Source of the DNA: Geosiphon pyriformis uo1
Taxonomy: Eukaryota; Fungi; Glomeromycota
Direction of reading: 5' to 3'
DNA length: 64,000 nucleotides
Assembly: GCA_016748015.1 (NCBI GenBank)
Contig: JAAOMT010000316.1
Span: 33,886-97,885, forward strand
Shown here: piece by piece, positions 37,316-60,731 of the stretch
Layout: each line of letters starts with the position of its first letter
Position numbering within the stretch: position 1 is the first letter of the stretch
Notes under the pieces: generated by a model
The model's input: only the letters and a program-made list of their open reading frames with translations
Database searches by the model: none
Told to the model about the DNA's origin: nothing
Position numbers and translations under genes: made by a program

Positions 37316-37849
37316 TTAAACGAGAAACCCAATTATATATGAAGTATAATTAAGCAAGCGAAATTCTAAAATTAATTGGATCAACTCTGTTTTAGAATTG
37401 AACCGAGTTACAGACCCTATTGAAAATATCGGTTTGAAATGTTATTCACAAAACTCTGCTTTAATATTCTAAATGAAGAATTCAAATCAAATTTCCAGTC
37501 GGACTTTTGAAGATCGATTAAAAATGTGTTTGGCATATTCATAAAACATTTTATCGACCATAAGGGTAACAAAATGAAAGTTTAGATTGAAAATTTGATG
37601 TCAAGTTTGGAAACATATTTCGTGTGTTTCCTTATTTTACTTATTAATGAAAAAGGAGTCTTAATTATTCAGATTTTATCCACATTATGGAAAGCCTTAA
37701 ATTTTATTTGGAAACTTATAATTGCAACGAAATGAAACCTCATTGAAATAACCAATTGAATGATTTTTTATGGATCACAAAAAAATATTTTAAACTGAGA
37801 ATTCAAAATATGAAATGCAATGAGGATTTTTTTAGTTCTGATCTTCCCT

Positions 37850-37895
37850 AACTTGATCGACATAATGGTCACCTATATATAAATAAAGAATTTTG
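37850..37895 (+). promoter_or_regulatory. Conserved upstream block of Myb family A genes (TATA-like)
   Basis: AACTTGATCGACAT..TGGTCA.CT.TAT(A)TAAA recurs upstream of the paralogues (~54530-54570 +; ~43915-43952, ~50790-50820, ~60780-60810 -), and homology stops just beyond it. Confidence 0.45.
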
Positions 37896-37938
37896 CACTC
37901 AAAACATTTGTTTATCACTTATTTTTTCAATCTAAGTC

Positions 37939-38948
37939 ATGATCAAATTACATTCTAACTATACCACAGGCTTTACGATTTGTATTTGGTCAAATTTAAT
38001 GAAACTAAATTTAAGTAAAAAGGAGGTAAGCTACTGCAAATAATCCGCATTCAATAAATAGAAAAGTTTTCTTATTCACCTATGAATTAGCTGATGGTTA
38101 CTAGCCAAAAGGATCATAAAATTCCTGGCCTAAGATATCATTGGACTTCGGAAGAAAAACAAAATCTCATTGAGCTACAAAAGAAGTACAGTTCAAATTG
38201 GAAGTTGATTTCTCACAAATATTTTCCTTCAAAAACAATCTCAGCTCTGAAAAATAAATTTTTAAGCTTAAGCACTGGCGAAAGTATTATTGATGATAGA
38301 TTAACCAAAAAGGTGCAGAAATGGACACTTGAAGAGGATGAGGAGCTACAATTGGCTGTCAAAAAACATTTGATCCATGGTAAAATCAATTGGAAAGCTA
38401 TATTTTTAACAGGCTGTTTTCCTAAAAGAAGTGTTAAAAGTTTAACAAGTCGATATTACGATTATTTAACGGAACCGAAACGTGGGCCATGGACTAAAAA
38501 TGAAGATGAACAACTGCGCAATTTAGTTCAGACACATGGCAAAAAATGGTCAAAAATAAGTCGTACTCTTCAAAGGCCCCCTAAGCACATACGATACCGC
38601 TATACCCACTTTTTGTCACCAGGGAGTAAGATTGGTTGTTGGACGCCTGAAGAATTCAAAATATTGGCCGAGGAAGCAGGAAAGTTCAATGAAAATTGGG
38701 AAGAAATCCAGCAATTAATACCCGGGCGACCTTTAAATTACATTAAAAAACTTTATTTTAATTCCCCAAAAGTTCAAAGGAAGTTCAATAGTGGAAAATG
38801 GAATGATATAGAAATACATAACTTAAATGAAGCATTAAAAGGCTTTGGTAAAAATTTTCAAAAGCTTTCAGAGGCTGTAGCTACGAGAAGCCCCGAACAA
38901 TGTTATCAAAGGACTTATTTCTGTGCTGAGAAAAAACAAAGAGTTTAA
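37939..38948 (+). CDS. Five-repeat Myb/SANT DNA-binding protein, family A copy A1
   Basis: Exon 1 37939-38025, 65-nt GTAAGC..TTAG intron, exon 2 38091-38948 in frame. Five W-T/N-x-x-E repeats (WTSEE, WTLEED, WTKNED, WTPEE, WNDIE). Confidence 0.9.
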
Positions 38949-39454
38949 TGAACTTGTTGCTTGCCAAAAAAAATCTCGCAAGATTATTATACGAGATTGT
39001 TTTTTTATATCGATAAAATTCTAAAATTAAAGCAAAAAAGGAATATATTAGCTTTGAACTTTCCAACCAAGTCCAAAATTTTAAGAAACTACTACCTTGA
39101 TAATTGAGATTTTTAATTTCAAAGATTTGATTGAATTGGACTGGATTTTTTTAAAGATATTTTGTAACAGCAGACCTGAAATTAAATTATAGATATATTT
39201 TCTTTATACTTATATAATTGCATTAATTATCATGAGTTCTTGGGAAAAACTGTTGAAACCCGGCTGATTTTCGGCACAATATGTTTGATTGTGAAGCTTG
39301 CTTATTGTGAACATTTTTCGGCTTAAAATGGAAATCTTTTATTTTAAGTTTAATCTTTAATAATGAGATTAAGGATTAAACGTTTATATTAATCATTTTT
39401 TTAGTTAGATTAATAAATTTAAATTCTCATAATAGTCACTCTGATTTTATCTGC

Positions 39455-39931
39455 ATCATGAAAAATCTTTTAAATAAAAGAACTCGTCCAGAAACTCATG
39501 ATTGCAACTAGTGTGAAATATGTCAAAAGAGCATTAGGAATAATGATTTAAGTAATAAGTGTAGAGCATGCCAATTCATATTTTTTAAAAATTTTACAAG
39601 GACTTTTCAAGCGAAAATAAATTAGTTGATGAAACCATTAAGAATCCAATTTATATTCCACCTATTGATAAAAAAAGATCAGTATGGTAGAGTTAATTAC
39701 TATAATTGGATTCCATGGGATCGTTTAAAGAATATCAAAAAAAATTGGTGAAGGAGGGTTCGCAATTTATAAAACAACATGAATTGATGGAAGAATTGAT
39801 TCAACTAGTATAAAACATCATGATACAATGAAATATAAAAGAATTAAATATAGAGACAGCAAGGAAGTAGCAATAAAATTTGTGAAGACGTCTTTACAGA
39901 ATGATGAAGAAGTATTCAAAGAGGCAATCAA

Positions 39932-39982
<51 letters not shown>

Positions 39983-40745
39983 ATTTATTCATCTGAAAGT
40001 TCAATTCTTATTTGGATTTTATTTATTTCATTTAATTAACGGTTAAAAATTGAAATAACTATGATTGGCATATATATCTCATCTAATAGGAAACCTGCGA
40101 AAATATTTAACAAAAAATTTTCATTCTACGAGTTGGGATGACTTAAAGAAATGCATTCCATTGGTATGATTCATTGTGACCTACACTCGGGCAACATCCT
40201 ACAGTATGATCAATCGTAATCATCGACTACAGCAATTGAAAAACTTAGGGTTATGTCAAACTACAAATTAAAGAAATAATAAATTTCGGAACAAAAACAG
40301 CAATACCAACAGCAGAAAATGAAACATTAAACTCAAAAACAACAACAGACGAGAAAAAAATGAATATTTAGAGTGATTCCATACATTCCCACCAGAAGTT
40401 TTTAAGAGGAGAAAAGTTCACAAAAAGGGGTGATATTTATAGTTTTTCCATGTAATTATGGGAATTACCAACCCTTTGATGATCACCCTCTCATAATGGA
40501 TATTCTAGACTTTCCCCTTATTACCTTGCTCTTCCGAAATAATTATAAAGTGTTGGCATGTTAATCTTGAAAATCTTCCTACTACCAAGAAAGTTGAAAA
40601 GAAGTTGAAGGGCCTTATTAAGATGTATAACTGCGTGAAGCTGACGCCCCTGAAATGGAACAGTATAAAGAATTAAATAAATAAGTAAAAGAAATGTTGA
40701 AAAACGATGCGACAACAAATTATTCAAACGAGAACGAGCATTTAT
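39455..40745 (+). pseudogene. Tyrosine-kinase-like kinase pseudogene
   Basis: NWIPWDRLKNIKKIGEGGF, EVAIKFV, MIHCDLHSGNILQ, IPYIPPEVLRGEKFTKRGDIYSF, KCWHVN; frameshifts and deletions. Confidence 0.85.
39932..39981. repeat. (TTA)n microsatellite (counterpart (TAA)n at ~41550-41598)
   Basis: Trinucleotide run visible directly. Confidence 0.95.
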
Positions 40746-40907
40746 CTAGGACCAGTTGATAAAAGTCGTCTCTTTAGATTTGCAAATAATCGATATTTAA
40801 AAACAGAATTTATTTACCTTCCAGAATTTTCAGAGAATTTTACATTTTAATAAATATAATTCACTCATAACAACAAAGTGTATTATAGCTATATTTTAAA
40901 AATCACT

Positions 40908-40927
40908 NNNNNNNNNNNNNNNNNNNN
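40908..40927. other. Assembly gap (20 N)
   Basis: Run of n characters. Confidence 1.
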
Positions 40928-41199
40928 ATTTTAATATCCGAAATTAATTATTGTCTTTGTTAATATTAAATAAAGAAATCAAAAAGTTAAATTCCAAAAA
41001 AAGAGATTAAAATTATAGGATTTTAAAAATATTAAAATCTTAAATAAATTTATTAAGTTTTTAATGTTATAATTTATTTTAAAATTTACTAGTTCATTAA
41101 ATTCTTATTCAATATAATTTTACTTATAATATGATTTTAAAAATAAAGAATATTTATTTTATTTATATTTTATCAAATGGCCAAACAAAAAATTTACTC

Positions 41200-41550
41200 G
41201 TTTAATGTTTCATTTTCTGCTGTTGGTATTGCTGTTTTTGTTCCGAAATTTATTATTTCTTTAATTTGTAGTTTGACATAATCCTAAGTTTTTCAATTGC
41301 TGTAGTCGATGATTACGATTGATCATACTGTAGGATGTTGCCCGAGTGTAGGTCACAATGAATCATACCAATGGAATGCATTTCTTTAAGTCATCCCAAC
41401 TCGTAGAATGAAAATTTTTTGTTAAATATTTTCGCAGGTTTCCTATTAGATGAGATATATATGCCAATCATAGTTATCTCAATTTTTAACCGTTAATTAA
41501 ATGAAATAAATAAAATCCAAATAAGAATTGAACTTTCAGATGAATAAATT

Positions 41551-41581
<31 letters not shown>

Positions 41582-42080
41582 TAATAATAATAATAATTTG
41601 ATTGCCTCTTTGAATACTTCTTCATCATTCTGTAAAGACGTCTTCACAAATTTTATTGCTACTTCCTTGCCGTCTCTATATTTTATTCTTTTATATTTCA
41701 TTGCACCATGATGTTTTATACTAGTTGAATCAATTCTTCCATCAATTCATGTTGCTTTATAAATTGTGCCGAACCCTCCTTCACCAATTTTTTTTGATAT
41801 TTTTTAAACGATCCCATGGAATCCAATTATAATAATTAACTCTACCATACTGATCTTTTTTTTATGAATAGGTGGAATATAAATTGGATTCTTAATGGTT
41901 TCATCAACTAATTTATTTTCGCTTGAAAAGTCCTTGTAAAATTTTTAAAAGATATTAATTGGCATGCTCTACACTTATTACTTAAATCATTATTCCTAAT
42001 GCTCTTTTGAAATATTTCACACTCGTTGCAATCATGAGTTTCTGGACGAGTTCTTTTATTTAAAAGATTTTTCATGATGC
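41200..42080 (-). pseudogene. Tyrosine-kinase-like kinase pseudogene (inverted copy, 3'-truncated)
   Basis: Reverse complement of 39455-40332, including the GEGGFG and HCDLHSGNIL motifs. Confidence 0.85.
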
Positions 42081-42843
42081 AGATAAAATCAGAGTGACTA
42101 TTATGAGAATTTAAATTTATTAATCTAACTAAAAAAATGATTAATAGAACCGTTTAATCCTTAATCTCATTATTAAAGATTAAACTTAAAATAAAAGATT
42201 TCAATTTTAAGCCGAAAAAAGTTCACAATTAGCAAGCTTCACAATCAAACATATTGTGCCGAAAATCAGCCGGGTTTCAACAGTTATTCCCAAGAACTCA
42301 TGATAATTCATGCAATTATATAAGTATAAAGAAAATATATCTATAATTTAATTTCAAGTCTGCTGTTACAAAATATCTTTAAAACAATCCAGTCCAATTC
42401 AATCAAATCTTTGAAATTAAAAATCTCAATTATCAAAGTAGTAGTTTCTTAAAATTTTGGACTTGGTTGGAAAGTTCAAAGCTAATAAATTCCTTTTTTT
42501 GCTTTAATTTTAGAATTTTATCGATAAAAAAACAATCTCGTATAATAATCTTGCGAGATTTTTTTTGGCAAGCAACAAGTTCACTAAACTCTTTGTTTTC
42601 TCTCAGCATAGAAATAAGTATCACAAAATACTAAAGAGTATTGCAATTTTTATTGAACAATGTTAATATTTGATCAATTCCTTTACTTTTATGTTTTTTG
42701 TGACTTGTTGGGCTGTTATCATTTACTTCTTTCAATATTTTTTTCAGGCAAGAGAAAAGACCGCCAATGCAATCTACACCACACATCTATATAAGTTTAA
42801 TGCATGTATATACACATTTTCTCATAGTGCAAGGAATACAAAT

Positions 42844-43865
42844 TCACAGCGGTATTTCAACTTGTTTCCTTCGCATCCTTTCATAACATTGTTTAGGACT
42901 TCTCGTAGTTACAGCCTCTGAAAGCTTATGAAAATTTGTACCAAAGCTTTTTAATGCTTCATTTAAGTTATGTATTTCTATATCATTCCATTTTCCACTA
43001 TTGAAATTCCTTTGAACTTTTGGGGAATTATAATAATGACTTTTAATATCCTTCAAAGGTCGCCCGGGTATTAATAGCTGGATTTCTTCCCAATTTTCAT
43101 TGAACTTTTCCGCTTCCTCGGCCAATATTTTGAATTCTTCAGGCTTCCAACAACCAATTTTACTCCCTGGTGCTAAGTAGTGGATATAATGGGCTTGTAT
43201 GAGCGCAGAGGGCCTTTGAAGAATATGACTTATTTTTGTCCAATTTTCACCATGTGTTTGAACTAAATCGCGCAGTTGTTCATTTTCATTTTTAGTCCAT
43301 GAACCACGCTTTGGTTTTCTCAAGACAAAGTGATACCGAGTCTTTAAACTCTTGGCACTTTTTTTGGGGAAACAGCCTGCTAAAAATATAGCTTTCCAAT
43401 TGATTTTACCATGGATCAAATGTTTTTTGACAGCCAATTGTAGCTTCTCATCCTCTTCAAATGTCCATTTCTGTGCCTTTCTAGTTAATCTATCATCAAC
43501 AATACTTTCGCCAGTGCTTAAACTATAAAATTTACTTCGCAGAGCTTGGATCGTTCTTGATTGAAAATATTTCTGAGAAATCAGCTTCCAATTTGAACCG
43601 TACTTCTTTTGACACTCAATGAGGGTTTGTTTTTCTTCCGGAGTCCAGTTACGACGATATCTTAGGCCAGGAATTTTATGATCCTTTTGGCCGATAACCA
43701 TCAGCTAATTCATAGGGGAATAAGAAAACTTTTCTATTTATTGAATGCGGATTATTTGCAGTAGCTTACCTCCTTTTTACTTAAATTTAGTTTCATTAAA
43801 TTTAACCAAATACAAAGGGTAAAACCTGTGATATAATTAGAACGCAATTTAATCGTGACTTGCAT
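42844..43865 (-). CDS. Five-repeat Myb/SANT protein, copy A2
   Basis: Exon 1 43865-43770 (MQVTIKLRSNY..SKKE), intron 43769-43705, exon 2 43704-42844 open (285-aa ORF). Confidence 0.9.
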
Positions 43866-45750
43866 AGTTTTGTGTTTGAAAAAAAATAAGTGATAAACCA
43901 ACGTTTTGAGTGCGAAATTCTTTATATAGATGATCAATATGTAGATCAAGTTAGAGATGGAAACTGATATGCTAAAACATTACTTATATATTAAATGTAT
44001 TGTACTTAGTTTAAAATATTGTTTTGTAATTCACTGCCAAATAAAAATATCATTCTAAGCTTTTTAATGGGTTAAACCATTTCAATTCGTCTCATTTCGT
44101 TTGTATGTTCTTGTAATTTGATACAGTAATTTTAATATTGTGAATTAAAAATTGTCACATCAAAACATCATCTTGTAAATTATTTAACTTTCATTATAAA
44201 TAAAAAGCAGAAGTAAAGAATTCGGGTTTATACTACCAATATGAAATTTTATTGCCCTTTATATTTCAAAAAAAACAAATACTGCCGCAAAGAGACTACT
44301 GAGTAATAATATCTCTATGTTTTTAGTTCAAAATTAATTACAACAAATTTGCATAAAATCCAGAGCTCATTTTATATAGTTGATATTTAGTGTTTTTAGA
44401 CTTAATTTTTCTCTTAATTAATCGAAACTAGCCTTTTCAAAGATTATTGATTGGTTAAAATAATGCAAGAATTAACAATTTAATTTTTTCAGTTTTAAAA
44501 GGATATGTCTCAAACATCATCTCGGCTTAAAATAATACCAGCATGAAATTGCTGGCATTTTTTAAGTATCAAAGATAAGAGTTTTAAGACATATTGTAGT
44601 CATAATAATAGATTTCGATTTCACAAATTTCGTGCATGCAAGAATGTCCCCTATTGTTCCCGTGTCCGAAAGCCCAATTAACTGCAATAGTAGCATTTTT
44701 ATAGCCTTAAAAACAATGGAAAACATCGTATATGAGAAAACTAAATGCACTTTTGAATTTCAAGAGCATCGATCCTTCAATCCTTCAATCCTATTTTGAA
44801 CTGATCCTACTAATAAATACACCATTTGAGCTGGAGATTTTTCAATGGAGTTATAATTTATTTAGTATGGAATTAACCTTTTAAGCATTAGGTTCCGAAT
44901 TTTCAGTTATTTAAAATAAATTTTCGGCACTATGACGGCCTAATCCTCGGCCTTGACAACTGGATGTTGCCGGAAACAGTAATAGGCTAAGAACATTTTC
45001 TGAAAAGTTTTTATATAATCTTTTTCTCTTATCATTGGTCATATCTGATATCTAAAACGGTTGGATGACGATTAAATCAAACTCACAAGTAAAAATAGGA
45101 TTGCATTTCTGTGGATTTCACTTTGCAGACGCAGAATCCTTCGTAGTATATGTGAGAGTCGCTGAGAAAAATTTTAGGTGCTTTGGAGTTTATAATCGAG
45201 AATTGCTTCACTAACTGCTATTTTCGATGGAGAATAATTTTGAACATGAGAATTTAATTACTTTAACTTCCTTTCAGGATGATTAGGCAAGAAGCTTTGC
45301 TATACTTTAAATAGAGATTTTTGATTCCCAAATATTTTTATAGCAATAGGCTGTTCTATTACCTAGCTTTAATCAGCTAATATCTTCATTATTAATATTT
45401 AAGTCTATGGTGGTTCCAAACTTTAGCTTTAAAATTAATTATTTAACAAATTCTTTAATAAATTTGTTGTTTGTTAGATAGAATTGAGATTTTTAGAAAT
45501 TTTTTATTAAAGTAAAAAAAAGGGTTCTGAATCTATATTTAGGTTTTCTCTTCAATAAAAAGATAAAAGTACTTTGCGAAGCCTGCCTTTTCAGAATTTG
45601 TCATTAATTACTGGCAATGAGATAAAAACTTGAAACATTTATGTTATGGATCTAAATCAGCTGGCTATGAAGAGCTTAGAATGAATTTTGAATATGAACA
45701 GATAAGTCTATATATTATTAAGAGTATTTGAAAAAAAAGACACATTCCTA

Positions 45751-46645
45751 TTAAATTTTAGAAAATTTATTGATCAAATCAGAGTCTTTTATCTCTACTG
45801 AATTCCATTTTCCCCTTATTTGAATTTTGGGTGAATGACGACAATAGTATCTTATACGATCTGAGGATCTTCCTGGGAGTAATCGCTGTATTTGTTCCCA
45901 ATTCTCACCATGAACTTGAAAAGCCTTAGCTAATTGATGAAACTCTTCGTTTGTCCATCGACTCCTTTTAATCCCAGATGCCAAGTAGTTATTGTAATGT
46001 GATTGAATTGAGTGAGTGGGCCTTTGAATAATATGACTTATTTCTTTCCAGTTTTTTCCATGGCTCTGCACTAAATTCAAAAGTTTTTCATCTTCTTCCT
46101 TGGTCCATGGACCACGTTTTGGTTGCGCTAAAACATGGTGATATCGATTGAATAAGTCTATAGTACTCCTTCCAGGAAAACGGCAAGTTAATAAAATAGC
46201 TTTCCAATCAACTTTTTATTGAATGAATGTTGTATTATAGCTATATACAGCTCTTTATCCTCTTCCAGCGTCCACTTTATTGAATTTAGGGTAAGTTTCT
46301 GATTGATATTTCCTCCATTAGCTCTTAAGTGATACCATTTATTTTTGACAGAATTAGCTGTTTTTAATGGAAATTGCTTTTGTGAAATTAATTCCCATTT
46401 TGAACAAAAAACATTATATGCCTCAAGAAGGGCTTTACTTTCTTCAAGGCTCCATCTTTGATTAACTATTGATAAAATAGTGTTTATATTTTCTAGTATT
46501 TCGGGATATTGTTAGCTAATTGTAAAGATAAAATCAGATGAATTCGAAATTGGTTAAGATTTTTAGCGACTTACTTTAGTTTCCTTAAAGTCAACCATAC
46601 CAAAAGGACGAGGCCTACTGTATTACTGGTTTGCGGTTTTAACAT
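45751..46645 (-). pseudogene. Four-repeat Myb gene, family B copy B1 (disrupted)
   Basis: WSLEE..KWELIS, WTLEED, GPWTKEED, RWTNEEF repeats. A one-base loss in an A-run at ~46215 relative to B2, and a stop just after the predicted splice junction. Confidence 0.8.
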
Positions 46646-47429
46646 AAGATTATTGCAACTTAAGAGATTGGAGACTAATTTTTTTTTCTAATCTCTGCTT
46701 ATATCTGTAACCATAAGGCCGATCATCTTGCTTTGCTAAAAACAAATAAATTCTTTGTTCTCTATTAAAACTTTCCTAAGTTAATAGTTAACCATCTTGA
46801 TGCTTTTCATAATTCAGTAAATAAGAACATAAAAAATTTTAGCTGCTTTTAATCAATTCATTTATGATTCGACAGTTTATTTCAGCCCCACTCTATTCAA
46901 AATAAATGGATAAATTTTATTGTGCAAAAAAATTTTATATTAGACTTTAAAGAATAACCTTCTGCTGGCAGTTTAGCACTTACAGAATAGACACTTTAAT
47001 GAAGAATAATGAAAAATTTTAATAATAAGTAACACTCGAAAATAAGAAACTTTTAGTTTTTATAAGTTTGAAAAATAAGAACCTTTAATTTTTTAGAAAA
47101 AAATTATAATTTATTATCCTATTAAATTTAGGGTATTGCTAAATCGACCCACCTGCAACACGTGATATTAATATATATAGAATTTTAATATTTATTTATT
47201 AGTAATTCTAATAAATATTAGTTTAATTAAAATAAAAAATAACTTTTTCTTATATAAAATTTTTAATTGGAAAATAATTTTATTAGGTGGCAGTTTCCTG
47301 AAAAAGGTAATAGAAATTTATCATGCGGTATTAACTATCATGGACCGACAGCAAAGAAAAACTTAGACCCGTGGCAAAAAAATGAGCTATATCCTTAAGC
47401 AGTATCTAAAAAAGTATTTGTTGTAGTTC

Positions 47430-49080
47430 TAAAATGGTTACACTATTACCAACTTGTTTTATCATTGTTAGAATTTGTGTCGTTGTGTCTTTAAAAGCTT
47501 TAATATAATTAATAGATGACTTACCTTGTGACTTTTCAACAGAATTGAAAAATTTTTTATAAAAGGATTAAAATATTCTACAAATGCCAACAAACTTTGC
47601 CCTTGAGTTTCCAAAGCAGCAATCTTTTTAATTAGATTTGCAAAAGTGACTACTGGTAGTAGAGCAAATTAGCTAACACTTTGAAATATGACACAAAACC
47701 AATTAATTGATTTAAAACAATATTTTCTAAACCAGGTAGTTTAATAAATTTTTAATACAGCTGAAAAAAGCAGCTTTATAGACAAAAGCCAAGTAATTTG
47801 AACTTTAAATTATCTTATCAAATCCAGTGTTTCTAATATACTCATTTATATAATTGCTTTTTAGATTTCAAAAGTTACAATTGCATATCTTTTAACAACT
47901 ATAAAATCAGTTAATCAAGAAATAAAACAGATTTAACTATAAAGTGACCAATTATATTACTACTTTTATAAGCTATATAGCTAAAAAAATTGAATAATAT
48001 GGTTTAAAAGCTTTGAAACAAAATTGATTAAGAAAATAAATAATAAAATATTATCACAAATTAGCAAGTTTAATATAATAACAAAACTTTTACCAAATCC
48101 TTTAAGAACATTTTGATATTGTCAAAAATATACTAAGGAAAACATTAGAAAGTGTAACAACAGCAAAATTTAATTCTAAAGCCATAACAGACTTTGCAAT
48201 TTTGAACATAATAAAAAAGAATAATTCAACAAAATCAATCTTAATAACAGCATTCAAGTATTCTTGAAAATATAAACTTTATACAAACTAACTTTAACAA
48301 TTAGGTTAATAATTCAAACATAAACATAGATTTAAATTTTTTTTGTGTACGATAATTTCTCAATTATTAGTTGTATATTAAAAAATACAACAATATTAAA
48401 AAAGAAAATATCTTTTTAATAAGTAATAATTAATTAAAAGCAGTCATATTAAACAATATAACCAATTTTAATCTGTATCTATTTTAATAAATGTACTATT
48501 ACTGTTGTTGTTTATAGCTAAATTAAGCTAACTGGTTTTTTTAGAATTAATGAAACAAACTTAGTAGAAAAACCAAAAGTAAACAAAAAAAAGCTGGTTT
48601 AAAAACAATAGTAGTATTTTAAAGTTTTCAAAAACACAAAACCAGTGCTTCAGAAGATGTCAAAAGAAAACATTCCTCTAGAATCTCCAAAATTTTTGCT
48701 GTTAATTAGTTTTTAGCTATTTTATTTTTCAAGCCATTTAAGAAATGGAGTGGTGACAAAAGCTAAGAAAAAGAAAAATTCTAATACAACCTTATTTTCA
48801 AAATTCTTAGGATTTTTGCTAATAGAAAAAACAATGCTAAAATTGTTTTTAGTGTTTATTTTCAAAGAAACTTTGACTAAAGAGAAACTTCCAGTCAAAA
48901 AAAAAGATGATTCTAAAACAACCAAAAATTGCTTAAGATTTGCTTTATTAGGGAAAACATTCTTACAGCATTTTTGTTTCGCTGTTATTATACTAAGAGA
49001 ACTTTATTGGTTGATGCTTTTTCAGTTATTTTAGCAAAAATAGTAATTGCTTTTTTTCTTTTGCTCTGGTTGTGAACATA
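47430..49080 (-). mobile_element. Possible heavily decayed transposon relic separating B1 from A3
   Basis: Absent from the duplicated A4-B2 block. Stop-riddled, with G/C-depleted coding-like texture like the other mutated elements; no unambiguous domain recognised. Confidence 0.3.
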
Positions 49081-49853
49081 AAATTTTAAAAAATTAATTT
49101 TCTTTCTTAATATAAAAATATATAAAGATTTTAAAATTTATCCTTTTGAACCGAATATTTTAGAAATCCCAAAAACAAATAATAATTTTAAAGAAAATAA
49201 TATAGAAATAATAAAAACCCGCTGAAAATTTCAGAAAAGGAGTTAAAAAAAAATTTTCGAGATGAATTTTATAATTTATGCATATTTAAAATCCTGAAAT
49301 TTATTTTTCAAACCTTCATTTTATTTAGCCAAAATTTGGAGCTCAATATCTAAAAGTTTTGGCATTTCTCAAATTTTAATTTTTACTTAAAGTTAATTTA
49401 AATGAAGTTTAACTTGAAAAAGACCTTGTACTTGAATGCTTTTAATAAAAACAACAATTTTTTCCAGAATTAAAATAACATTCATTTGCAAAGATATAAA
49501 AGTAGCAAAACACTTGAAAAGCTATTAAAATTCTATGGTTCTTTTGAAAAATATTTAAATTTAGATTCTTTTAAAAATTCTCTGAAACTTTTAGAGAATT
49601 AGTAAGTTAAGTAAGATTTAAAACTAACTTTATTCAAGTCTAGCAATATATTTCAAGAAATTTCTCACAAAAATATCTTTCAGAAAATTCAGGTTCAAAT
49701 TAATTATTTATATTGGATTTATTTATTTAAAGATGTTTTAACTAAACTCCGTAATTATTAGAAAGAGTTGCTTTATCTTTCATTCTATCCCAATTTAATT
49801 CTATCTATCTCCATTATAAAAAATCAGAATCAGAGCCAAGAAAAGCTCATATT

Positions 49854-50760
49854 TTATTGGAATTTCCACTTGTTTCCCTTTCCATTGTTGGGAACCTCTC
49901 GTAGTTACAGCTTCTGAAACCTTTTGAAAATTTCTACCAAATTTTTCGAATGCTTCTTTTAAGTAATGTATTTCTATAACATTTCATTTTCTACTATTGA
50001 AATTCCTTTGAACTTTTGGGGAATTATAAGAAGTTCTTTTAATCTCACTTAAAGTTCGCCCGCTCCCTGGTGCCAAAAAGCGGGCATAGTGCTGTTGTAT
50101 GAGCTTAGGCCGCCTTTGAAGAATATGGCTTATTTTTTTATATCTTTTGCCATATGTCTGAACTAAATTGCGTAGTTTTTCATCTTCATTTTTAGTCCAT
50201 GGCCCACGTTTTGTTTCTGTTAAATAATAGTAATACCGATTCGCTAAACTTTTAGCACTTCTTTTAGGGAAACAGCCAGTTAAATATATGGATTTCCGAT
50301 TTTACTATGAATTAAATATTTCTTGGCAGCCAATTGTAGCTCCTCATCCTCTTTAAGTGTCCATTTCTGCACCTTTCTGGTTAATCTATCATCAATAATA
50401 CTTTCGCCAGTGCTTAAGTTTAAAAATTTACTTCGCAGAGCTTGGATCGTTCTTGATTGAAAGTATTTCTGAGAAATCAGCTTCCAATTTGAACCGTACT
50501 TCTTTTGACACTCAATGAGCATTTGTTTTTCTTCCGAAGTCCAGTTCTGACGAGTCTTAACCTAGAAATTTTATGACCACCTTGGCTAGTAACCACCAGC
50601 TAATTCATAAGTGAATGAGAGAACTTTTTTATTGATTGAATGCGGATTATTTGCAGTAGCTTACCTCCTTTTTACTTGACTTCAGTTTCATAAAATTTAA
50701 CCAAATACAAATAGTAAAACCTGTGGTATAATTAGAACGCAATTTGATCGTGACTTGCAT
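49854..50760 (-). pseudogene. Five-repeat Myb family A copy A3 (pseudogene)
   Basis: Same exon 1 and intron. Frameshifts at ~50550 and ~50290; most of repeat 4 deleted at ~50062 (..LAPGS|GRTLSEIK..). Confidence 0.88.
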
Positions 50761-51329
50761 AGTTTTGTGATTGAAAAAAAAAAAATTATTTATATAGATG
50801 ATCAACGTGTCGATCAAGTTAGGAAGGTCAGAAGGTCATGCATGACAAAACAACTAATAAAGAAAAAATCCTCAGAGATGTAAAGTTTTAAAAATACATA
50901 TCGATCAAAAACTTAATGGCTTAGATTGTTAAAATATTTACCTATTTAATTGCAAATGTAAAATATAGATCTGCATTCAAACTGTTTTCTTGATTCCCCC
51001 AATTTCACCAATCTATAATAAATAAAATGGCATTATGGCAACATGATATAAAAAATACCAAATTATTCTGCTATGCTCTTTATTATTTTAGATTCCTTGC
51101 AGTATAAAATAGAAAAGAAGCTTAAAGAAGATTTATTACTGCATTCATCTTAATTCTTTGGCAAAACGTATTCGCAAAGAAGTACCTAGTAGATAAACAG
51201 AATCTTGTGAATTAGAATTAGTAGGATAAAATTAAATGGCTAAATATAACTATAATCCAGTGAATTAATCGAATTGAAGATACTTTTTATTAATTAGTTA
51301 AACTGATTTATTGAAAAATCAACCAGTTC

Positions 51330-52500
51330 AGCAGTTAAAAGATGACATGTATAAACTGCGCCTGGATGAATTAATACCCTTGAAAATTTTGTTTCCGAGG
51401 TTTTTGTTACCGAATCGTTTTCTTCCCATTCCAACTGTTTATAAACTTCTTCGGCAGTAGAAAGATTCTTAAAATTAGCATCTCAGCATTTAGCGATTTA
51501 AGGTAAAACAAGGGGGAGGTATTGTTAGGACTTTGACCATTTAAAATTGTCATTATAGATATTAGTCATAGTAACCTTTTCTCCTCTTAAAATTTCTGGT
51601 AGAAGGTATGAAAATTACTACATATATATTCCTTTTTTCTCTCTTATTGTTGCTGTTGTCGTTTTTGAGCTTGATGATTGACTCAATCTGAGGTCTTCAA
51701 TACCTACATCATTATAGGATGTTGCCCAAGTGTAGGTCACGAAGAACCATACCAGAATTAATTGTATTAAGTCCATCAGCATTTTGCAGCGCGATTAGTA
51801 TTTTACAAGGCTAACTCGTAGAATAAATATTCGTTGTTAAATATTTTTGCATGTTCATGTCTGGCAAAATCCATCACAATCCCATACTTGAATGTTTCAG
51901 CGTTTAGATAAAGAATGTGCATCCATAGTGCTTTGAAATTTATATCAAGACTGAATCTTTAGATGAATATAATCTAATAATAGTAATTTGATTACCTCTT
52001 TGGAGACTTTTTCACTATTCCGCAAAGATATCTTTATAAATTTTCTTGCGACTTCCATCTCTTTCATCTTCTCTCGTCCTAGCTATTAACTATTCCTCTT
52101 GTTATATTCCATTGCTATGATGTTTACATCAATCAATCTATCTATCTATCAATTAGTGTTGTTTTATAAACTATACCAAACCTCCCTCGTTGATATTCGA
52201 TAGATCATCCTATGAAATTATTTCATAAAATCTTAAAGACTATTAATTTTTAAATTTCTTCTGCTATAGATAATAAGATTTTTGATAAACGAATCTATGT
52301 AATATATCTCTAGAACATTAATTGGATTTAAACAAAGCATGGCTTAGACCCGAACTTTTGGGTGGATGGAAGTATTTCATTACAGTAAGCAAAATGATTT
52401 TGAATTTTTACAAAGCATGATAATTCACGATAAGCTCATATTACCTCTTGAAATTTAGAAAATAGCATCACCACAGGTATTCGTTCCTAAAGAGATATTT
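51330..52500 (-). pseudogene. Tyrosine-kinase-like kinase pseudogene
   Basis: EGGLV, YGIVMDFARHEH, IADGLNTINSGMVLRDLHLGNIL, PEILRGEK motifs, with disruptions. Confidence 0.8.
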
Positions 52501-54605
52501 GTCATCGTAATAGCTCAATCCAAACATAAAAAGTTTGGTGTTTAGGATTAAAAAGTTCATTAAGAATTCAATATTTCATGGATTGGGAAATCATGAAAAA
52601 TTTGGAAGGGGATACAAATCAGCATTTAAAAAAATGGAGATTTCTCTTGTTTGTAATATTTTACAAATAAATACAAATCACTTGATTTAGTTATCATATA
52701 AGAGAAAGATTGTTCCATCTTTTAAAATTCATAGAGGATCTTAGTATAGTTATTTCAGAAATTTGAACTATTTCATAGCTTTAATATACATAACTGAAAT
52801 ATATCTTGCTTAACGTCCAAACATTCAATGCTTAATAAAAAATTGATTATTTAAAAGGTATAGACATAAATCTTTTAGTTTTTTACACATTTAGCTTTTT
52901 AGATGATGTTTAATGACTTAAAAACTGAAACTCAATCATCTTAATTGATAATAAAATTAAAAAGTATTTCAGCACATAATTTTTAAACTCTATATTCTAA
53001 TATTAAGCGTGGTATAAAAAATAACTGGCAGAAATAGATTCGGTGTCTGTTTTTGTTTTCATAATCTTATTATTTACTTTTGATTGCTTTCTTGGCAAAC
53101 AATTCTGATAGCACTACATTTAATTTACTATTTCATATATAAAACATATAATCTAATCCCCATTCGAAACTGAATTTAATAATAATTTCAAATGGTTTGA
53201 AAAAAATTCATAAAACATCTAAACGTAATTTTTCAATGACATATAAAAATGAAAGAATGACAAGCTGTAAACTGAGAAATTGTTATATTAAAAAAACTTT
53301 GACGCAATCTTTCATAGCATCTTCGAAAAGGTCTAAATTCTATCCCTAAAGTTTATATGATTTGAGTTTTAGTGAATTGCAAATTTGCATGTTTTTTAGT
53401 GTAAGTTTTTGGCCGATTGGTTAAAACTGCTACTGTCGCAACTTACTTTTAATAAAAGAAAACTTGCTAATTTCATACAAGTTCAAATTTATCTTTTTAT
53501 TTATATTCAATTAATAAACCTTATTTTCGGATTATTTTTAAAAACTTTTGATAGTAGTCCGTTTTTTATTTTTCCAATATAAATAGGTTACAGAAATTAT
53601 ATTTCAAGATATGTTAAACTTTGATGTCTTAACAAATTAATAATTGGATAAAGATTTTTGCGAAATTTTTATTGCACATTACTGTTTCTTTAAATGGGAC
53701 ATTAAACTCTCCGCAAAATTATCCTCTTTGTCACTCTAAGATTTCTCCTAACACGATTACTAGTCAATTTCATTCAGGTACAAATTTAACTAGCTCCAGA
53801 ATTTACTTTAAAAAAAACACTGAATTATTCTAATCCTAATTCATGAATAAATTTCTGTGTCAGAAAATGGGTTTTTAATTATTGCGATCGAGGTGTAGTT
53901 CAACCACTAACTATTTCGCACAAGACAATTGTCATGAATTAGATGTGGATCGTACGTTAATTATAAAGAGTCCTAATAATAAAAAATTCATTTATTGATG
54001 TGATTTATTTCTTGCCTTGGTTTTAGTATAATAAGTTAAATCGAGTTAACTTTAAAACTTTATGTGTCATATTATTCCTTAAAAAGATTTTCCTTCAAAA
54101 AGCATCCCTAAAATCTATAAAAATTAGACTATTTGACAGTTTTACTTAGCAGCTCTTTTCGCAGGAAGGAACTCTTTTGAGCAGTTTATTTTTTTGAAAC
54201 AGAAAAGTTAAAAAATTTCAGATGGGCAATTTAACCCTGAATTCTTAACTTCTGCTTTTGATTCATATTGAAAATTGAATAATTTGTGAGATTATATGAT
54301 AATTTTTATTAAAATTCATATATCGAATCACAAGAGCATACAAACAAAATGGGACGAATTTAAACCTCATTGAAAATATTTTAACGTATTCAAAAATTAA
54401 GTTCTTTTAATTAAATAGGTTTTTTATTTGATGATAGATCACAAACAATATTTCAAGCTGAGAATTCAAAATATACGAAATAAAGTACTATAAATGTTTT
54501 TGCGTAACCTTCTTTTTCTGATCTTTCTAACTTGATCGACATACTGGTCATCTGTATAAATAAAGAATTTCCCATTCAAAACATTTATTTTTTCAATCAC
54601 GAACT

Positions 54606-55609
54606 ATGAAAGTCACGATCAAATTGCATTCTAATTATACCACAGGTTTTACAATTTGTATTTGGTTAAATTTAATGAAACTAAATTTAGGTAAAAAGGA
54701 GGTAAGCTACTGCAAATAATCCGCTTTCAATAAATAGAAAAATTTTCTTATTCACCTATGAACTAGCTGATGGTTACTAGCCAAGAGTATCATAAAATTC
54801 CTAGCCTAAGATATCATTGGACTTCGGAAGAAAAACAAACCCTCATTGAGCTATATAAGAAGTACGGTTCAAATTGGAAGCTGATTTCTCAGAAATATTT
54901 TCAATCAAGAACGATCCAAGCTCTGCGAAGTAAATTTTATAGTTTAAGTACTGGCGAAAGTATTGTTGATGATAGATTAACTAAAAAGGCACAGAAATGG
55001 ACACTTAGAGAGGATGAGGAGCTACAATTGGCTGCCAAGAAATATTTAATTCATGGTAAAATCAATTGGAGATCCATATTTTTAACTGGCTGTTTCCCTA
55101 AAAGAAGTGCTAAAAGTTTAGCGAATCGGTATCACGGTGTTTTAACGAAACCAAAACGTGGCCCATGGTCTAGAAATGAAGATGAACAACTGCGCAATTT
55201 AGTTCAGACACACGGTGAAAAATGGACAAAAATAAGTCATATTCTTCAAAGGCCTCCTAAGCTCATACGACAGAAATATATCCGCTACTTTGCACCGGGG
55301 ATTAAAATTGGTCGTTGGACACCTGAAGAATTCAAAATATTGGCTGAGGAGGTGGGAAATTTAAATGAAAATTGGAACGAAATTCAGGAATTAATACCCG
55401 GGCGACCTTTAAGTGATATCAAAAGAACTTATTATAACTCCCCAAAAGTTCAAAGGAAGTTCAATAGTGGAAAATGGAATGATATAGAAATAAATACCTT
55501 AAATGAAGCATTCAAAAGATTTGGTAAAAATCTTCATAAGCTTTCAGAGGCTGTAATTACGAGAAGTCCCAAACAATGTTATGAAAGGATGCAAAAGAAA
55601 ACAATTTGA
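54606..55609 (+). CDS. Five-repeat Myb/SANT protein, copy A4
   Basis: Exon 1 54606-54701, intron 54702-54766, exon 2 54767-55609 open (279-aa ORF). Confidence 0.9.
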
Positions 55610-56878
55610 AATGTGGGCTTTTTTTGGCTCTGATTCGAATTTTTTATAACGAAGATGAGTTAGAATTAAATTTGGATAGAAGATTCCAGATACATTTTTA
55701 TAAAAGCAAATATTGATAAACCACCATATTATAGTTTGAATTAACAATTTTTTTTGAAGAAAAAATAAAATAATTATAGTATAATAATCACTAAGAATGT
55801 TCCTTAACATCGAAACTTTTTTATTTGATAATTAGAAGTAACCGTGATTTCTTATTTTATATTAAAAGATAATAAATATTTTATTCACCATAAGCGTTCT
55901 ACGCATAAAAACCATTATGCCTTCCGCAATTCCTTTAAATAAATAATCGCCCACAAAAAGATTTAACACAAAAAAATTCAAAATATTTTTACTCAAAGAG
56001 CTCTACACAAAAAAAGAGACTTATTTAATTATCTAAACCCAAAAGTAAATGGTTTAATACAGCCAATAATATTTAAAAAAAAAATGTGCTATAGAAAACA
56101 TCATCAGATTTCTATTGATTCAAAACTTATTTTTAAAGTTTCTTTGTACAATTAGGTACCAAGTGATTATTGGAGTGTGATTGAAAGCTGGGCCTTTTAA
56201 GAACATCGCTTATTTTTGCTGTTTATTCTTTGCTTGCGTCGATATATTTTTATTACCTCTTCCGCCTTATAAATTCTTTTCTAATTAAAAAAATAACAAA
56301 GCGAAGATTTTAGACAAGTTCTAGATTTTTCCAGCAGCGCACTTGCTATTAGGTGAGTGACCCCTCAGGAAGTATTTGTGATAGTGAAAAAAAATTTTGC
56401 GTTAATGTTATTTATAAAATCCCAATCGAAGTTTGTTAGAGGTGTGACTTTAAATGATTGAGCCCTTGAGTAAAGAGAAAATAACTTTCAAACTTGAGAT
56501 TAAAGGGGAAATATTATTCCTCATTAAAGTGTCTATTCTATAAGTGCTAAACTGTCAGCAGAAAGTTTTATTTAAAGTTCAATATAAAAAATTTTTGCTC
56601 AATAAAAATTTATTCATTTATTTTGAGTAGAGTGGGGCTCAAAATAACTAATCTTAATCATATATAAATTGATTAAAATCAGCTAATACTTTTCATAACC
56701 TAATTCACCGAATTATGAAAGCATCAAGTTTTTTTGAAGATGGTTGATTATTAGCCTTGAAAAGTTTTAAGTATCACTGCAGGTGGCGTTTATAGAGAAC
56801 AAAGAATTTATTTGTTTTTAGCAATGATCGGCCATATGTTTACAGATATAAACAGAGATTAAAAAAAACAATAATCTT

Positions 56879-57722
56879 ATGTTAAAATCGCAAACCAGTA
56901 ATAAAATAGGTCACGCCCTTTAGGTATGGTTGACTTTAAGGAAACTAAAGTAAGTCACTAAAAATCTTAACTAATTTTTAATTCATCTGATTTAATCTTT
57001 AATATTTAGCCGGCGATTCCCCCGAAATACTAGGAAATAGAAACAATGCTTTTTCAAGAGTTAATCAAAGATGGAGTCTTGAAGAAATTAAAGTCCTTTT
57101 TGAGGCATATAAAGTTTTTGGTCCAAAATGGGAATTAATTTCACAAAAGCAATTTCCATTAAGAATAGCTGGATCTCTCAAAGATAAATGGTATGACTTA
57201 AGAGCTAATGGAGGAATTATCAATCAGAAATTTATTCTAACTTGGGCGCCGGAAGAGGATAAAGAGCTTTATATAGCTGTCATACAACATTCATTCAATA
57301 AAAAAGTCGATTGGAAGGCTATTTTATTCACTGGCCGTTTTCCTGGAAGAAGTAATCAAGACTTATGCAATCGATATTACAATGTTTTAGCGCAATCAAA
57401 ACGTGGTCCATGGACCAAGGAAGAAGATGAAAAACTTTTGAGTTTAGCGCAGAGCCATGGAAAAAGATGGACAGAAATAAGTCATAGCCTTCAAAGGCCC
57501 GCTTGCTCAATTCAATCACATTACAATAACTTTTTGGCACCTGGGATTAAAAAGAGTCGATGGACAAACGAAGAGTTTCATCAATTAGCTAAGGCTTTTC
57601 AAGTTCATGGTGAGAATTGGGAACAAATACAGCAATTACTCCCAGGAAGATCCTTACATCAGATAAGATGCTATTGTCGTCGTTCACCTAAGATTCAGAT
57701 CAAGGGGAAACAAACTCAGTAA
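56879..57722 (+). pseudogene. Four-repeat Myb gene, family B copy B2 (exon 2 open, 5' exon damaged)
   Basis: Open frame 57012-57722 with four Myb repeats. Predicted exon 1 has an in-frame TAG (~56921), and its phase does not match exon 2. Confidence 0.72.
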
Positions 57723-59712
57723 AGATAAGTTTGACCCAACAATTTATAATATATAGAAAGATTTCATGGGCGGAAAATACGCGCAATTAATAAAAAAATT
57801 TGATTCGACCCAAAATTCATAGCAGTACTTTAGGAAGGGGTCTTTTTTCTCAAATACTCACAATTATATATGCATTTATCAGTTCACATTCAAAATTCAC
57901 AACTTGTTGTAAGCTTTTTTTAGCTACTTAGATCCGCAACATAAAATTATTAATTTTTTTATCTTATTGTCAGTAAATTATTGACAAAGTTTCCAAAAGA
58001 TAATAACAGTATTTTTCTAATCATTGAAGCAAAATAATTTTTGGAGGCTTTACAAAGTAGTTTTATTTATTATAAAAAATTTTTAAAGAAAATAAATTAA
58101 ATATATATCGAGTACCCTTTAGTTAAAGAGTCCTAAAAATTTAAGACATGTTTCAAGGTTTTTATTTTTAATATATTAAAAATATTTATTATTATGAATT
58201 CACTTAGGGTTTTGAATTTTTAATCGTTTCTAAAAATTATATCCATCTATTTTTAAAATTATCAAATATAAAAACTTAAAAATTAACTTACCCTCAAGTA
58301 TTTTGAAATTAGCGATAGCAGTATTAATCTTAATATCTAGAGTCCTGGAGTCCTGGTATATATTTTTTTTTGGTTTAAGTATTTATCAATAATTTATTGC
58401 TTTATATTTTATTTGCACAATCAAAATAGCAAATGCGTCAATTAAATGAAAGAAATTATGTGAATACAAAAATTAGTCTTTTTAATTGAAGATCGGTCAA
58501 GCCCATGAACAAAAAATTTAAAAAAAGTTAAATAGCTTGATTATATTAAAAATATCAAATAAGCAAAATTTTGTGATAAAAATGCTATTGAAATAAATTT
58601 TATATAAATATCTAATCAAGTTAAATTAATAATTTTTTATCATCATTACCATTTTACTAATTTTTAAAAACATCAACAATTTTTCATATTATAATATTAA
58701 GTAATTTTAATAAAAATCAATATAAATTTATATGGATACTATTTTTACCTTGCCACACAAATCATCATGACTATTAATATTACCAGAAAATTATCGCAAA
58801 CAATAACTTGTGATGGATATTCTAAAAAAAGTGAAGCACCTGAAATCATCTTTCCTTATTTCACCTTGTTGAGCTGACTAGTTGTTTGTCAATCTTTCGA
58901 ATCTCTCTACCGTTAAAGAAGTTGAACAGAAGTCAAAGAAAACTTGTTTTGGTTGGTTCATTGAGAATTCATTTGATGGCTACGATAAATTGTGACTAAG
59001 ATTTCATCATATTGAAAATATTTAAACATTTTTTATAAAAATTGTCAACGTTAATATTTATGCAATAGTACTTTTGGATATAAATCAAGCTTGCTTATAA
59101 AAAGTTTTTAAAAACCCTCCGATTAATTAAACCACTCTCATTAAACAAGATTTTTATAATCAAGTATTTATATATTGTATAAAAAAAATTAAAATTCCAC
59201 AAATGTCTAAACTCGAATCAAAGCTACATTTAATCCACTATTATACATTTTTAGTTCCAAAAAAAATTTTTCACGACACGTATTTCCCTGTGAAATTTTT
59301 CAAAAACTTTTTCTTGGGATTGTCATTAAAAATATATGTAAGTGAGTTTGAAAGAATAAATTTATTTAATAGTTTGTTGTATTTTATTATTGGTCATTTT
59401 TTGTTAATTCTTTATAACTATAATATCGATGGACTTGCTTGAGAAAAGTAAGGTTAAAAATTTTTGGAGCATTAAAATATAAATCTTTTTTTTGACATTG
59501 AAATAACAACAATTTAATGTAAAGTTTTTCTCTTGCTTGATATTTGTGAATAGTTTGTATCGCAAAAAACTATAAATACCCAATTCTATCAGATGAGAAA
59601 TCACTAAATTAAAAATATCTAATATCTTGTTACTAAAATAAAAAACTAATAGGAGACACAGTTGATATCTGTTATTCAGAATTTTTTTTGTTGTCTATTA
59701 TTTTATTCAAGT

Positions 59713-60731
59713 CTAACTGTTTATCTTTGTTTTCTTTTGCATCTTTTTCCAACATTGTAGGTAACTTCTCGTAGTTACAGCCTCTGAAAGCTTCTGAGGA
59801 TTTTTACCAAATTTTTTGATTGCTTCATTTAAGATATGTATTTCTATATCATTCCATTTTCCACTATTGAAATTCCTTTGAACTTTTGGGGAATTATAAT
59901 AATTGCTTTTAATATCCTGCAAAGGTCGCCTGGGTATTAATTTCTGAATTTCTTCCCAATTCTCATTAAACTTTCCCGCCTCTACAGCCAATATTTCAAA
60001 TTCCTCAGGTGTCCAACAACCAATTTTATTCCCTGGTGACAAAACGCGGTTATAGTGGTTTCGTATGAGCCCAGGAGGTCTTTGAAGAATATGACTTATT
60101 TTTGTCCATTTTTTGCCATGTGTCTGAACTAAATTGTGCAGTTGTTCATCTTCATTTTTAGTCCATGGGCCACGATTTGGTTTCGCTAAAAATTCGTGAT
60201 ACCGATTCACCAAACTTTTAACACTTCTTTTAGGGAAACAGCCAGTTAAAAATATAGATTTCCAATTGATTTTACTATGGATCAAATATTTCTTGGCAGC
60301 CAATTGTAGCTCCTCATCCTCTTTAAGTGTCCATTTCTGCGCCTTTCTAGTTAATCTATCATCAACAATACTCCCACCAGTTCTTAATCTATATAATTTA
60401 CTTCGCAGAGCTTGGATCGTTCTTGATTGAAAATATTTCTGAGAAATCAGCTTCCAATTTGAACCGTACTTCTTTCGTAGCTCAATGAGGTTTTGTTTTT
60501 CTTCCGGAGTCCAGTTACGACGATATCTTAGGCCAGGAATTTTATGATCCTTTTGGCCATTAACCATCACCTAATTCATAGGTGAATAAGAAAACTTTTC
60601 TATTTATTGAAAGCGGATTATTTGCAGTAGCTTACCTCATTTTTACTTAAATTCAGTTTCATTAAATTTGACCAAATACATATTGTAAAACCTGTGGTAT
60701 AATTAGAATGCAATTTGATCGTAGCTTTCAT
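59713..60731 (-). CDS. Five-repeat Myb/SANT protein, copy A5
   Basis: Exon 1 60731-60636, intron 60635-60571, exon 2 60570-59713 open (285-aa ORF). Confidence 0.9.

Follow-up and report, generated by a model that had tools for sequence, protein, structure and literature searches.

Evidence for positive selection at predicted base-contact codons in a clustered five-repeat Myb gene family of Geosiphon pyriformis

A cluster of five-repeat Myb genes

Why should neighboring genes with closely similar promoters and introns differ most in the helices through which their Myb repeats would be expected to touch DNA? The question is raised by a gene cluster in the fungus Geosiphon pyriformis (Glomeromycota; genome, 128 Mb; GC content, 27%), located at 37.9-60.8 kb of the window, by which we mean the whole 64,000-nucleotide (nt) stretch analyzed here (contig C507, JAAOMT010000316.1, positions 33886-97885). 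The cluster contains four intact genes for proteins with five Myb repeats (A1, A2, A4, and A5), together with A3, a pseudogene of the same type, and B1 and B2, both broken copies that belong to another type of Myb gene. These gene models agree with the original prediction, made from the DNA alone, which had called the same four genes intact and A3 a pseudogene; all the peptide strings that it cited are present in the window. As developed below, the genes probably belong to a lineage-expanded five-Myb family in which base-contact positions are positively selected, sequence is shuffled by gene conversion, and each paralogue has a predicted site of its own. The five-Myb genes are as follows.

37939-38948, + strand: A1, intact five-Myb gene, 314 residues (exon 1, 37939-38025; 65-nt intron, 38026-38090; exon 2, 38091-38948)
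42844-43865, - strand: A2, intact five-Myb gene, 318 residues (exon 1, 43770-43865; intron, 43705-43769; exon 2, 42844-43704)
43516-43551, 43321-43356, 43174-43209, 43027-43056, and 42856-42897, - strand: predicted third (recognition) helices of A2, repeats 1-5 respectively
about 49870-50790, - strand: A3, pseudogene of the same subfamily as A1, A2, A4, and A5, with promoter, exon 1, and intron retained
54606-55609, + strand: A4, intact five-Myb gene, 312 residues (exon 1, 54606-54701; intron, 54702-54766; exon 2, 54767-55609)
59713-60731, - strand: A5, intact five-Myb gene, 317 residues (exon 1, 60636-60731; intron, 60571-60635; exon 2, 59713-60570)

Each intact gene consists of a first exon of 29-32 codons, a 65-nt intron that begins with GTAAGC and ends with YAG, and a long exon of 279-285 codons, and the splice is the same as that in the NCBI models of paralogues. 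The body of A3 carries deletions of 1 nt, 4 nt, 96 nt, and 12 nt, with frameshifts, and an in-frame stop.

For sequence searches and fold prediction the exon 2 open reading frames (ORFs) were used, and for length and isoelectric point (pI) the joined, spliced models. Pfam Myb_DNA-binding (PF00249) matched five stretches in each of the four intact ORFs (E-values 1e-38 to 1e-45), scoring 131-151 bits per ORF against a cut-off of 24.4, which places them among the Myb/SANT repeat proteins. No family other than Myb/SANT exceeded the Pfam gathering cut-offs in these ORFs, TPR_HPS5_insect and Rap1_C being weak and below cut-off. The AlphaFold2 model comprises five three-helix bundles, with a mean predicted local distance difference test score of 88.6. 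The spliced proteins of 312-318 residues have a pI near 10 and a net charge between +26 and +34, with about 50 residues ahead of repeat 1 and fewer than 15 behind repeat 5, and the third tryptophan of the repeats is replaced by Tyr, Phe, or Met. These data support a description of the proteins as nearly pure arrays of five Myb repeats with no recognizable effector domain, much as had been proposed for products of about 310 residues.

Diversifying selection at predicted base-contact positions

Fourteen copies with the intron sequence in common form the subfamily to which the window genes belong. Nine of them are intact and 74-82% identical in protein sequence to A2; these nine intact paralogues, over 272 codons, are the sample for the selection analyses below unless the window genes are named. 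HMMER aligns repeats 2-4 in register with R1R2R3 of c-Myb (E-value 6e-14), and the contacts in the published c-Myb-DNA complex are taken here to be Lys128, Glu132, and Asn136 (R2) and Asn179, Lys182, Asn183, Asn186, and Ser187 (R3). The contact set was fixed before rates were examined and comprises positions W-6, W-3, W-2, W+1, and W+2, counted from the third aromatic residue of each repeat; of the resulting 25 codons, 23 can be aligned.

Among the four window genes, amino-acid identity is 83% outside helix 3, 58% in helix 3, and 38% at the contact positions. Pooled Nei-Gojobori ratios of non-synonymous to synonymous differences (pN/pS) fell from 1.66 for contact codons to 0.55 for the remainder of helix 3 and 0.39 outside it, and the corresponding maximum-likelihood values of omega (dN/dS) in a fixed-sites model were 2.49, 0.88, and 0.45, with omega = 1 at the contact codons rejected (twice the log-likelihood difference, 2dlnL, 33.95; p = 6e-9). 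Site models also favored a positively selected class, with 2dlnL of 58.7 for M1a/M2a (p = 2e-13) and 55.3 for M8a/M8 (p = 1e-13). M7 against M8, a comparison that had been proposed as a check on this locus, gave 77.0, and dN/dS lies above 1 at the helix 3 contact sites. Under M2a, 13.9% of sites have an omega of 3.9, and 63% of sites fall in a class with an omega of 0.09. Of the 16 sites with a posterior probability above 0.9, nine fall in helix 3 and five belong to the contact set (odds ratio 6, p = 0.006); selected sites also occur outside helix 3, in helices 1-2 of repeats 1 and 5 and most of all in repeat 5. To guard against inflation of the site-model tests by recombination, M1a/M2a was also run with a separate tree for each repeat, which gave a summed 2dlnL of 43.9 (10 degrees of freedom, p = 3e-6), with repeats 1, 3, and 5 individually significant.

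The excess can also be seen without a tree. Contact pN divided by gene-wide pS was 1.62 for the nine paralogues (bootstrap interval 1.23-2.11) and 1.42-2.40 in all six pairs of window genes, and the observed contact pN was higher than that of every one of 10,000 random 23-codon sets, so that the concentration of variability first noticed in the third helices goes far beyond chance. Synonymous divergence is alike in the two classes of codon (pS 0.22 at contact codons and 0.205 at others), and the contact excess is therefore specifically non-synonymous. The same comparison led us to reject uneven homogenization, in which conversion would have erased differences everywhere except in helix 3. In a second subfamily, on contig C669, the closest pair has the same excess, with a contact pN of 0.27 against a pS of 0.11-0.15. 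When 32 family members, drawn from eight or more glomeromycotan genera, are compared, most variation again falls in the contact columns (3.1 bits of entropy, versus 1.9 elsewhere; p about 1e-11).

These results support positive diversifying selection at the positions homologous to the base contacts of c-Myb and show purifying selection on the scaffold of helices 1-2, hydrophobic core, and linkers. The original prediction of diversifying selection is borne out (contact omega 2.5, p = 6e-9; site-model p values of the order of 1e-13 or lower). Its account of helices 1-2 and linkers as almost invariant was overstated, given the 83% identity outside helix 3 and the selected sites found there.

Might helix 3 instead be the least constrained part of genes with little or no function, diverging under relaxed constraint in a decaying birth-and-death family? 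Relaxation pushes omega toward 1 and not beyond, and both the contact omega of 2.5 and the rejection of M8a, which permits a neutral class, are at odds with it, as are the 63% of sites under strong constraint (omega 0.09) and the persistence of nine intact ORFs of about 280 codons at 27% GC. Some features do speak for it: breakage or truncation affects five of the 14 subfamily members and both B copies of the window, omega reaches a moderate 0.45 outside helix 3, and repeat 5 has an overall omega of 0.9. On balance we regard relaxed constraint as very unlikely to be the explanation.

Several points do weigh against positive selection of DNA contacts as we propose it. The broken or truncated subfamily members are among them, and so is repeat 5, where omega is raised across the whole repeat, partly as relaxed constraint would have it. 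Repeats 2 and 4 are not significant alone. The contact positions were set by homology and helical periodicity rather than from a DNA complex of these proteins. The codon models are our own implementation, not PAML or HyPhy, and leave multi-nucleotide changes unmodelled, and such changes, like recombination, can inflate site-model tests. Finally, in a comparison of paralogues an arms race that still goes on looks the same as divergence that followed duplication in the past, and the selection cannot be dated.

Relation to c-Myb, SNAPC4, and other Myb/SANT proteins

The best sequence and fold matches of the family are DNA-bound Myb domains, namely those of c-Myb, SNAPC4, Trichomonas Myb proteins, and Reb1. 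With c-Myb and 3R-MYB proteins the family shares the three-helix fold and its spacing, and its repeats 2-4 align with R1R2R3 without a shift in register, at about 31% identity; it differs in having two extra repeats, Tyr, Phe, or Met in place of the third Trp, and no transactivation domain. Recognition helices are the most conserved part of c-Myb and of plant R2R3 proteins, whereas in this family they are the most variable part.

SANT-type Myb folds bind partners other than double-stranded DNA, and selection might act on a contact between the variable face of helix 3 and RNA, histone tails, or a protein. Pfam SANT_DAMP1_like also scores on repeat 1, the third tryptophan is swapped, and some selected sites lie in helices 1-2 of repeats 1 and 5, all of which would suit such a partner. 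The DNA-bound nature of the top matches, the pI of about 10, and the fall of the variable positions on the base-contact register of c-Myb argue the other way, as does repeat 4, in which Lys at W-3 and Asn at W+2 are kept in all nine paralogues while the other contact positions vary. A partner of this kind therefore seems to us quite unlikely.

The family profile matched human SNAPC4 in a single stretch that covers all five repeats (positions 52-326 to SNAPC4 residues 224-499; E-values 3e-41 to 5e-42), and when the whole model was submitted to Foldseek, SNAPC4 in mini-SNAPc (7xur_A) ranked first and c-Myb second. The five-repeat layout, initially thought unusual, is not so in itself, since it is collinear with the SNAPC4 Myb domain: SNAPC4 (SNAP190; Rh-Ra-Rb-Rc-Rd) and plant 4R-MYB proteins likewise have a block of five consecutive Myb repeats. 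Nothing in the family aligned to SNAPC4 residues 1-223 in the profile match, and the proteins thus differ from SNAPC4 in having no counterpart of that part, which includes the region for assembly with SNAPC1 and SNAPC3 into the complex, or of the long C-terminus. They differ further in that their repeat 1 is a full three-helix repeat in the AlphaFold2 model rather than a half repeat, and in that they come in dozens of clustered copies with hypervariable recognition positions (contact omega 2.5), unlike the low-copy gene with conserved promoter-reading helices expected of SNAPC4.

The likeness nevertheless raises the idea that the proteins are alternative SNAPC4 subunits, which would plug into the small nuclear RNA (snRNA)-activating complex and redirect it to different promoter elements. 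The unbroken five-repeat match (E-value 5e-42), the first-ranked full-length Foldseek match, and the existence of SNAPC3 and SNAPC1 genes in Geosiphon would all be expected on that account. What is difficult to reconcile with it is that the match begins only at SNAPC4 residue 224, with about 50 residues before repeat 1 and no counterpart of the N-terminal assembly region; that c-Myb R1R2R3, matching over three repeats only, scores about equally; and that dozens of copies have hypervariable recognition helices while snRNA promoter elements are conserved. We consider this role highly improbable. Since SNAPC3 and SNAPC1 are each present at a single locus, a canonical SNAPC complex probably exists separately in Geosiphon.

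Gene conversion and the A1/A2 inverted duplication

The paralogue tree is star-like and the distances are mosaic; A1 and the paralogue C788a, for example, differ by 1.3% in repeat 4 and by 11-12% in repeats 1 and 5. Significant conversion tracts were found for A1-C520a, A4-C520a, and A2-A4 in a run-length permutation test with Bonferroni correction, and the A4-C520a tract covers the recognition helix of repeat 3. As judged from these tracts, gene conversion shifts repeat segments, recognition helices included, among paralogues and also across contigs.

A1 and A2 lie on the arms of an inverted duplication.

38913-42619, no strand assigned: inverted duplication behind A1/A2 (3' flank arms, 38913-40332 and 41200-42619, 97.3% identical)

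The spacer between the arms is 867 nt long and contains an assembly gap. Where the arms carry the genes (37845-38913 and 42876-43957), identity is only 86.6%, and the switch from 97.3% falls at a 257-nt deletion in A1, where A2 keeps the sequence at 42620-42875. The deletion replaced the end of repeat 5 in A1 and rewrote its C-terminus relative to that of A2. The pattern is what would be expected if the inverted duplication were recent and the A1 body had afterward undergone ectopic conversion from a donor resembling C788a. An assembly artefact is an unlikely source of the palindrome, as the arms differ by 29 mismatches and five gaps and the genes are just 87% identical.

The gap itself is a run of N at 40908-40927 in AT-rich intergenic DNA, 1960 nt past the A1 stop and 1917 nt past the A2 stop; it touches no gene, and no reading frame runs across it.

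The conserved intron and upstream block

The 65-nt intron has 14 copies in the genome, all in the subfamily of the window genes (the A3 copy at about 50600-50665). Its pairwise distance of 0.05 is lower than that at third codon positions (0.154) and contact codons (0.316), and lower than that of its neighbors, exon 1 (0.10) and the promoter (0.165). Of the 65 intron columns 14 vary, compared with 21 of the 35 fourfold sites (p = 2e-4). The original prediction had noted that the intron is more conserved than the recognition codons, and the effect turns out to be stronger than stated, for the intron is more conserved than silent sites too. No Rfam match at E-values up to 1 was found for the conserved intron or the cluster. 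On the strength of this conservation the intron may be a regulatory element.

A second conserved noncoding element lies directly 5' of the genes.

37845-37938, + strand: conserved block 5' of A1 that includes a TATA-like element (equivalents 5' of A2, A3, A4, A5, and paralogues on other contigs)

The block is common to all nine intact paralogues, and two TTGATC-like half-sites about 8 nt apart precede its TATA-like element. Its sharing suggests common regulation of the whole subfamily.

Exon 1 (37939-38025 in A1, and the other first exons) encodes a conserved basic, Ser/Thr-rich peptide with a hydrophobic stretch and no family match. A sixth copy of the subfamily on contig C507, A6, lies just outside the window and has a stop after its first ATG as well as a 1-nt deletion that puts exon 1 out of frame with exon 2; because of this, the translation of exon 1 is uncertain in some copies.

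Family size and range

A search of the Geosiphon genome returned 75 or more matching stretches. About 36 of them span at least 200 residues of the query, and the family clusters on contigs C507, C310, C520, C788, C669, C596, and C692. Compact five-repeat relatives were retrieved by an exhaustive profile search from Ambispora, Acaulospora, Diversispora, Funneliformis, Paraglomus, Entrophospora, and Rhizophagus. With relatives in these seven further genera, the type, as recognized by profile, occurs across the Glomeromycota. Almost all the proteins retrieved by a further profile search, which was word-indexed, came from Geosiphon, and in a search of 5.8 billion proteins all the Geosiphon family members were records from NCBI and nr only.

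A possible repertoire of DNA readers

How might selection on these positions work? In the reading that we favor, each Myb repeat would read a few base pairs (bp) through helix 3, so that five repeats would specify a long site, and each paralogue would recognize its own site of roughly 15-20 bp. Near-identical promoters and introns could co-express the paralogues as a repertoire. Selection would favor new specificities, either because the proteins track fast-changing genomic targets or because they acquire new targets after duplication. Transposons, satellites, lineage-specific promoters, and foreign DNA are candidate targets; the targets named in the original prediction, transposons or symbiont/organelle nucleic acid, are conjecture. 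Its observation of hypervariable recognition helices is confirmed, and its interpretation is partly supported.

Among modular DNA readers, C2H2 zinc fingers are a familiar case in which positive selection centers on the residues that contact bases; for Myb arrays, or for any family of fungal transcription factors, we are not aware that it has been described. A full-text literature search, whose coverage excluded the Geosiphon genome paper, returned no description of such selection or of this family. The family resembles KRAB zinc-finger clusters, PRDM9, and insect ZAD genes in its clustered recent duplicates, modular array, base-contact selection, and exchange of modules by recombination. It differs from them in fold (Myb rather than C2H2), in having no KRAB, SET, or ZAD effector, and in a number of modules fixed at five. 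The analogy with KRAB zinc fingers and PRDM9 drawn at the outset thus holds for the evolutionary mode of clusters, contact selection, and module exchange, and not for the molecules, which have neither C2H2 fingers nor a KRAB domain. Restorer-of-fertility-like pentatricopeptide repeat (PPR) genes of plants are comparable as well, being clustered paralogues that encode helical-repeat readers of nucleic acid, with diversifying selection confined to specificity positions; PPR proteins, for their part, read organellar RNA and have targeting peptides.

By extension of the zinc-finger analogy, the family could be a glomeromycotan, Myb-based counterpart of the KRAB zinc fingers, that is, a set of co-regulated five-module readers whose recognition helices selection diversifies and gene conversion reshuffles, and which would track fast-evolving genomic parasites (transposons, satellites) or foreign DNA in a coenocytic, endosymbiont-bearing cell, with the 65-nt intron as a shared control element. 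We think this specific version unlikely. If the paralogues do bind different sites, they would provide a natural series for the Myb recognition code across five linked repeats and would point to an unrecognized system of genome conflict or regulatory innovation in the arbuscular-mycorrhizal lineage. The idea lends itself to direct testing, since these small, intact proteins vary chiefly in their recognition helices.

Other features of the locus

The second Myb type has four repeats and a stub and is about 47% identical to the A type. Its two window copies are interleaved with the A genes.

45754-46553, - strand: B1, second Myb type, probably a pseudogene (match split over two frames)
57021-57722, + strand: B2, second B-type copy, probably a pseudogene (stop codons within the match)

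B2 is 90% identical to B1 over 410 nt. B-type relatives are intact on contigs C520, C788, and C692, and both copies in the window look broken.

We rejected a transposon-borne origin of the Myb genes (for example, as accessory proteins of a PIF/Harbinger element), as the cluster has no terminal repeats, sharp unit ends, or transposase ORF. The sequence shared among copies comprises promoter, exon 1, intron, and ORF only, and fades unevenly downstream. A subtelomeric location was also considered, and no telomere-type repeats were found at the ends of contigs C507, C520, and C788. Just one transposon-like coding trace was seen across the window, an ORF with a weak RNase H match, just below the Pfam cut-off, which is probably a retroelement remnant. 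Directly upstream of the Myb cluster lie two ORFs that match class-3 lipases (Pfam Lipase_3).

17876-18508, - strand: ORF with weak RNase H match (E-value 3e-5)
30545-31051, + strand: ORF with class-3 lipase match (E-value 2e-6)
36037-37319, + strand: ORF with class-3 lipase match (E-value 7e-9)

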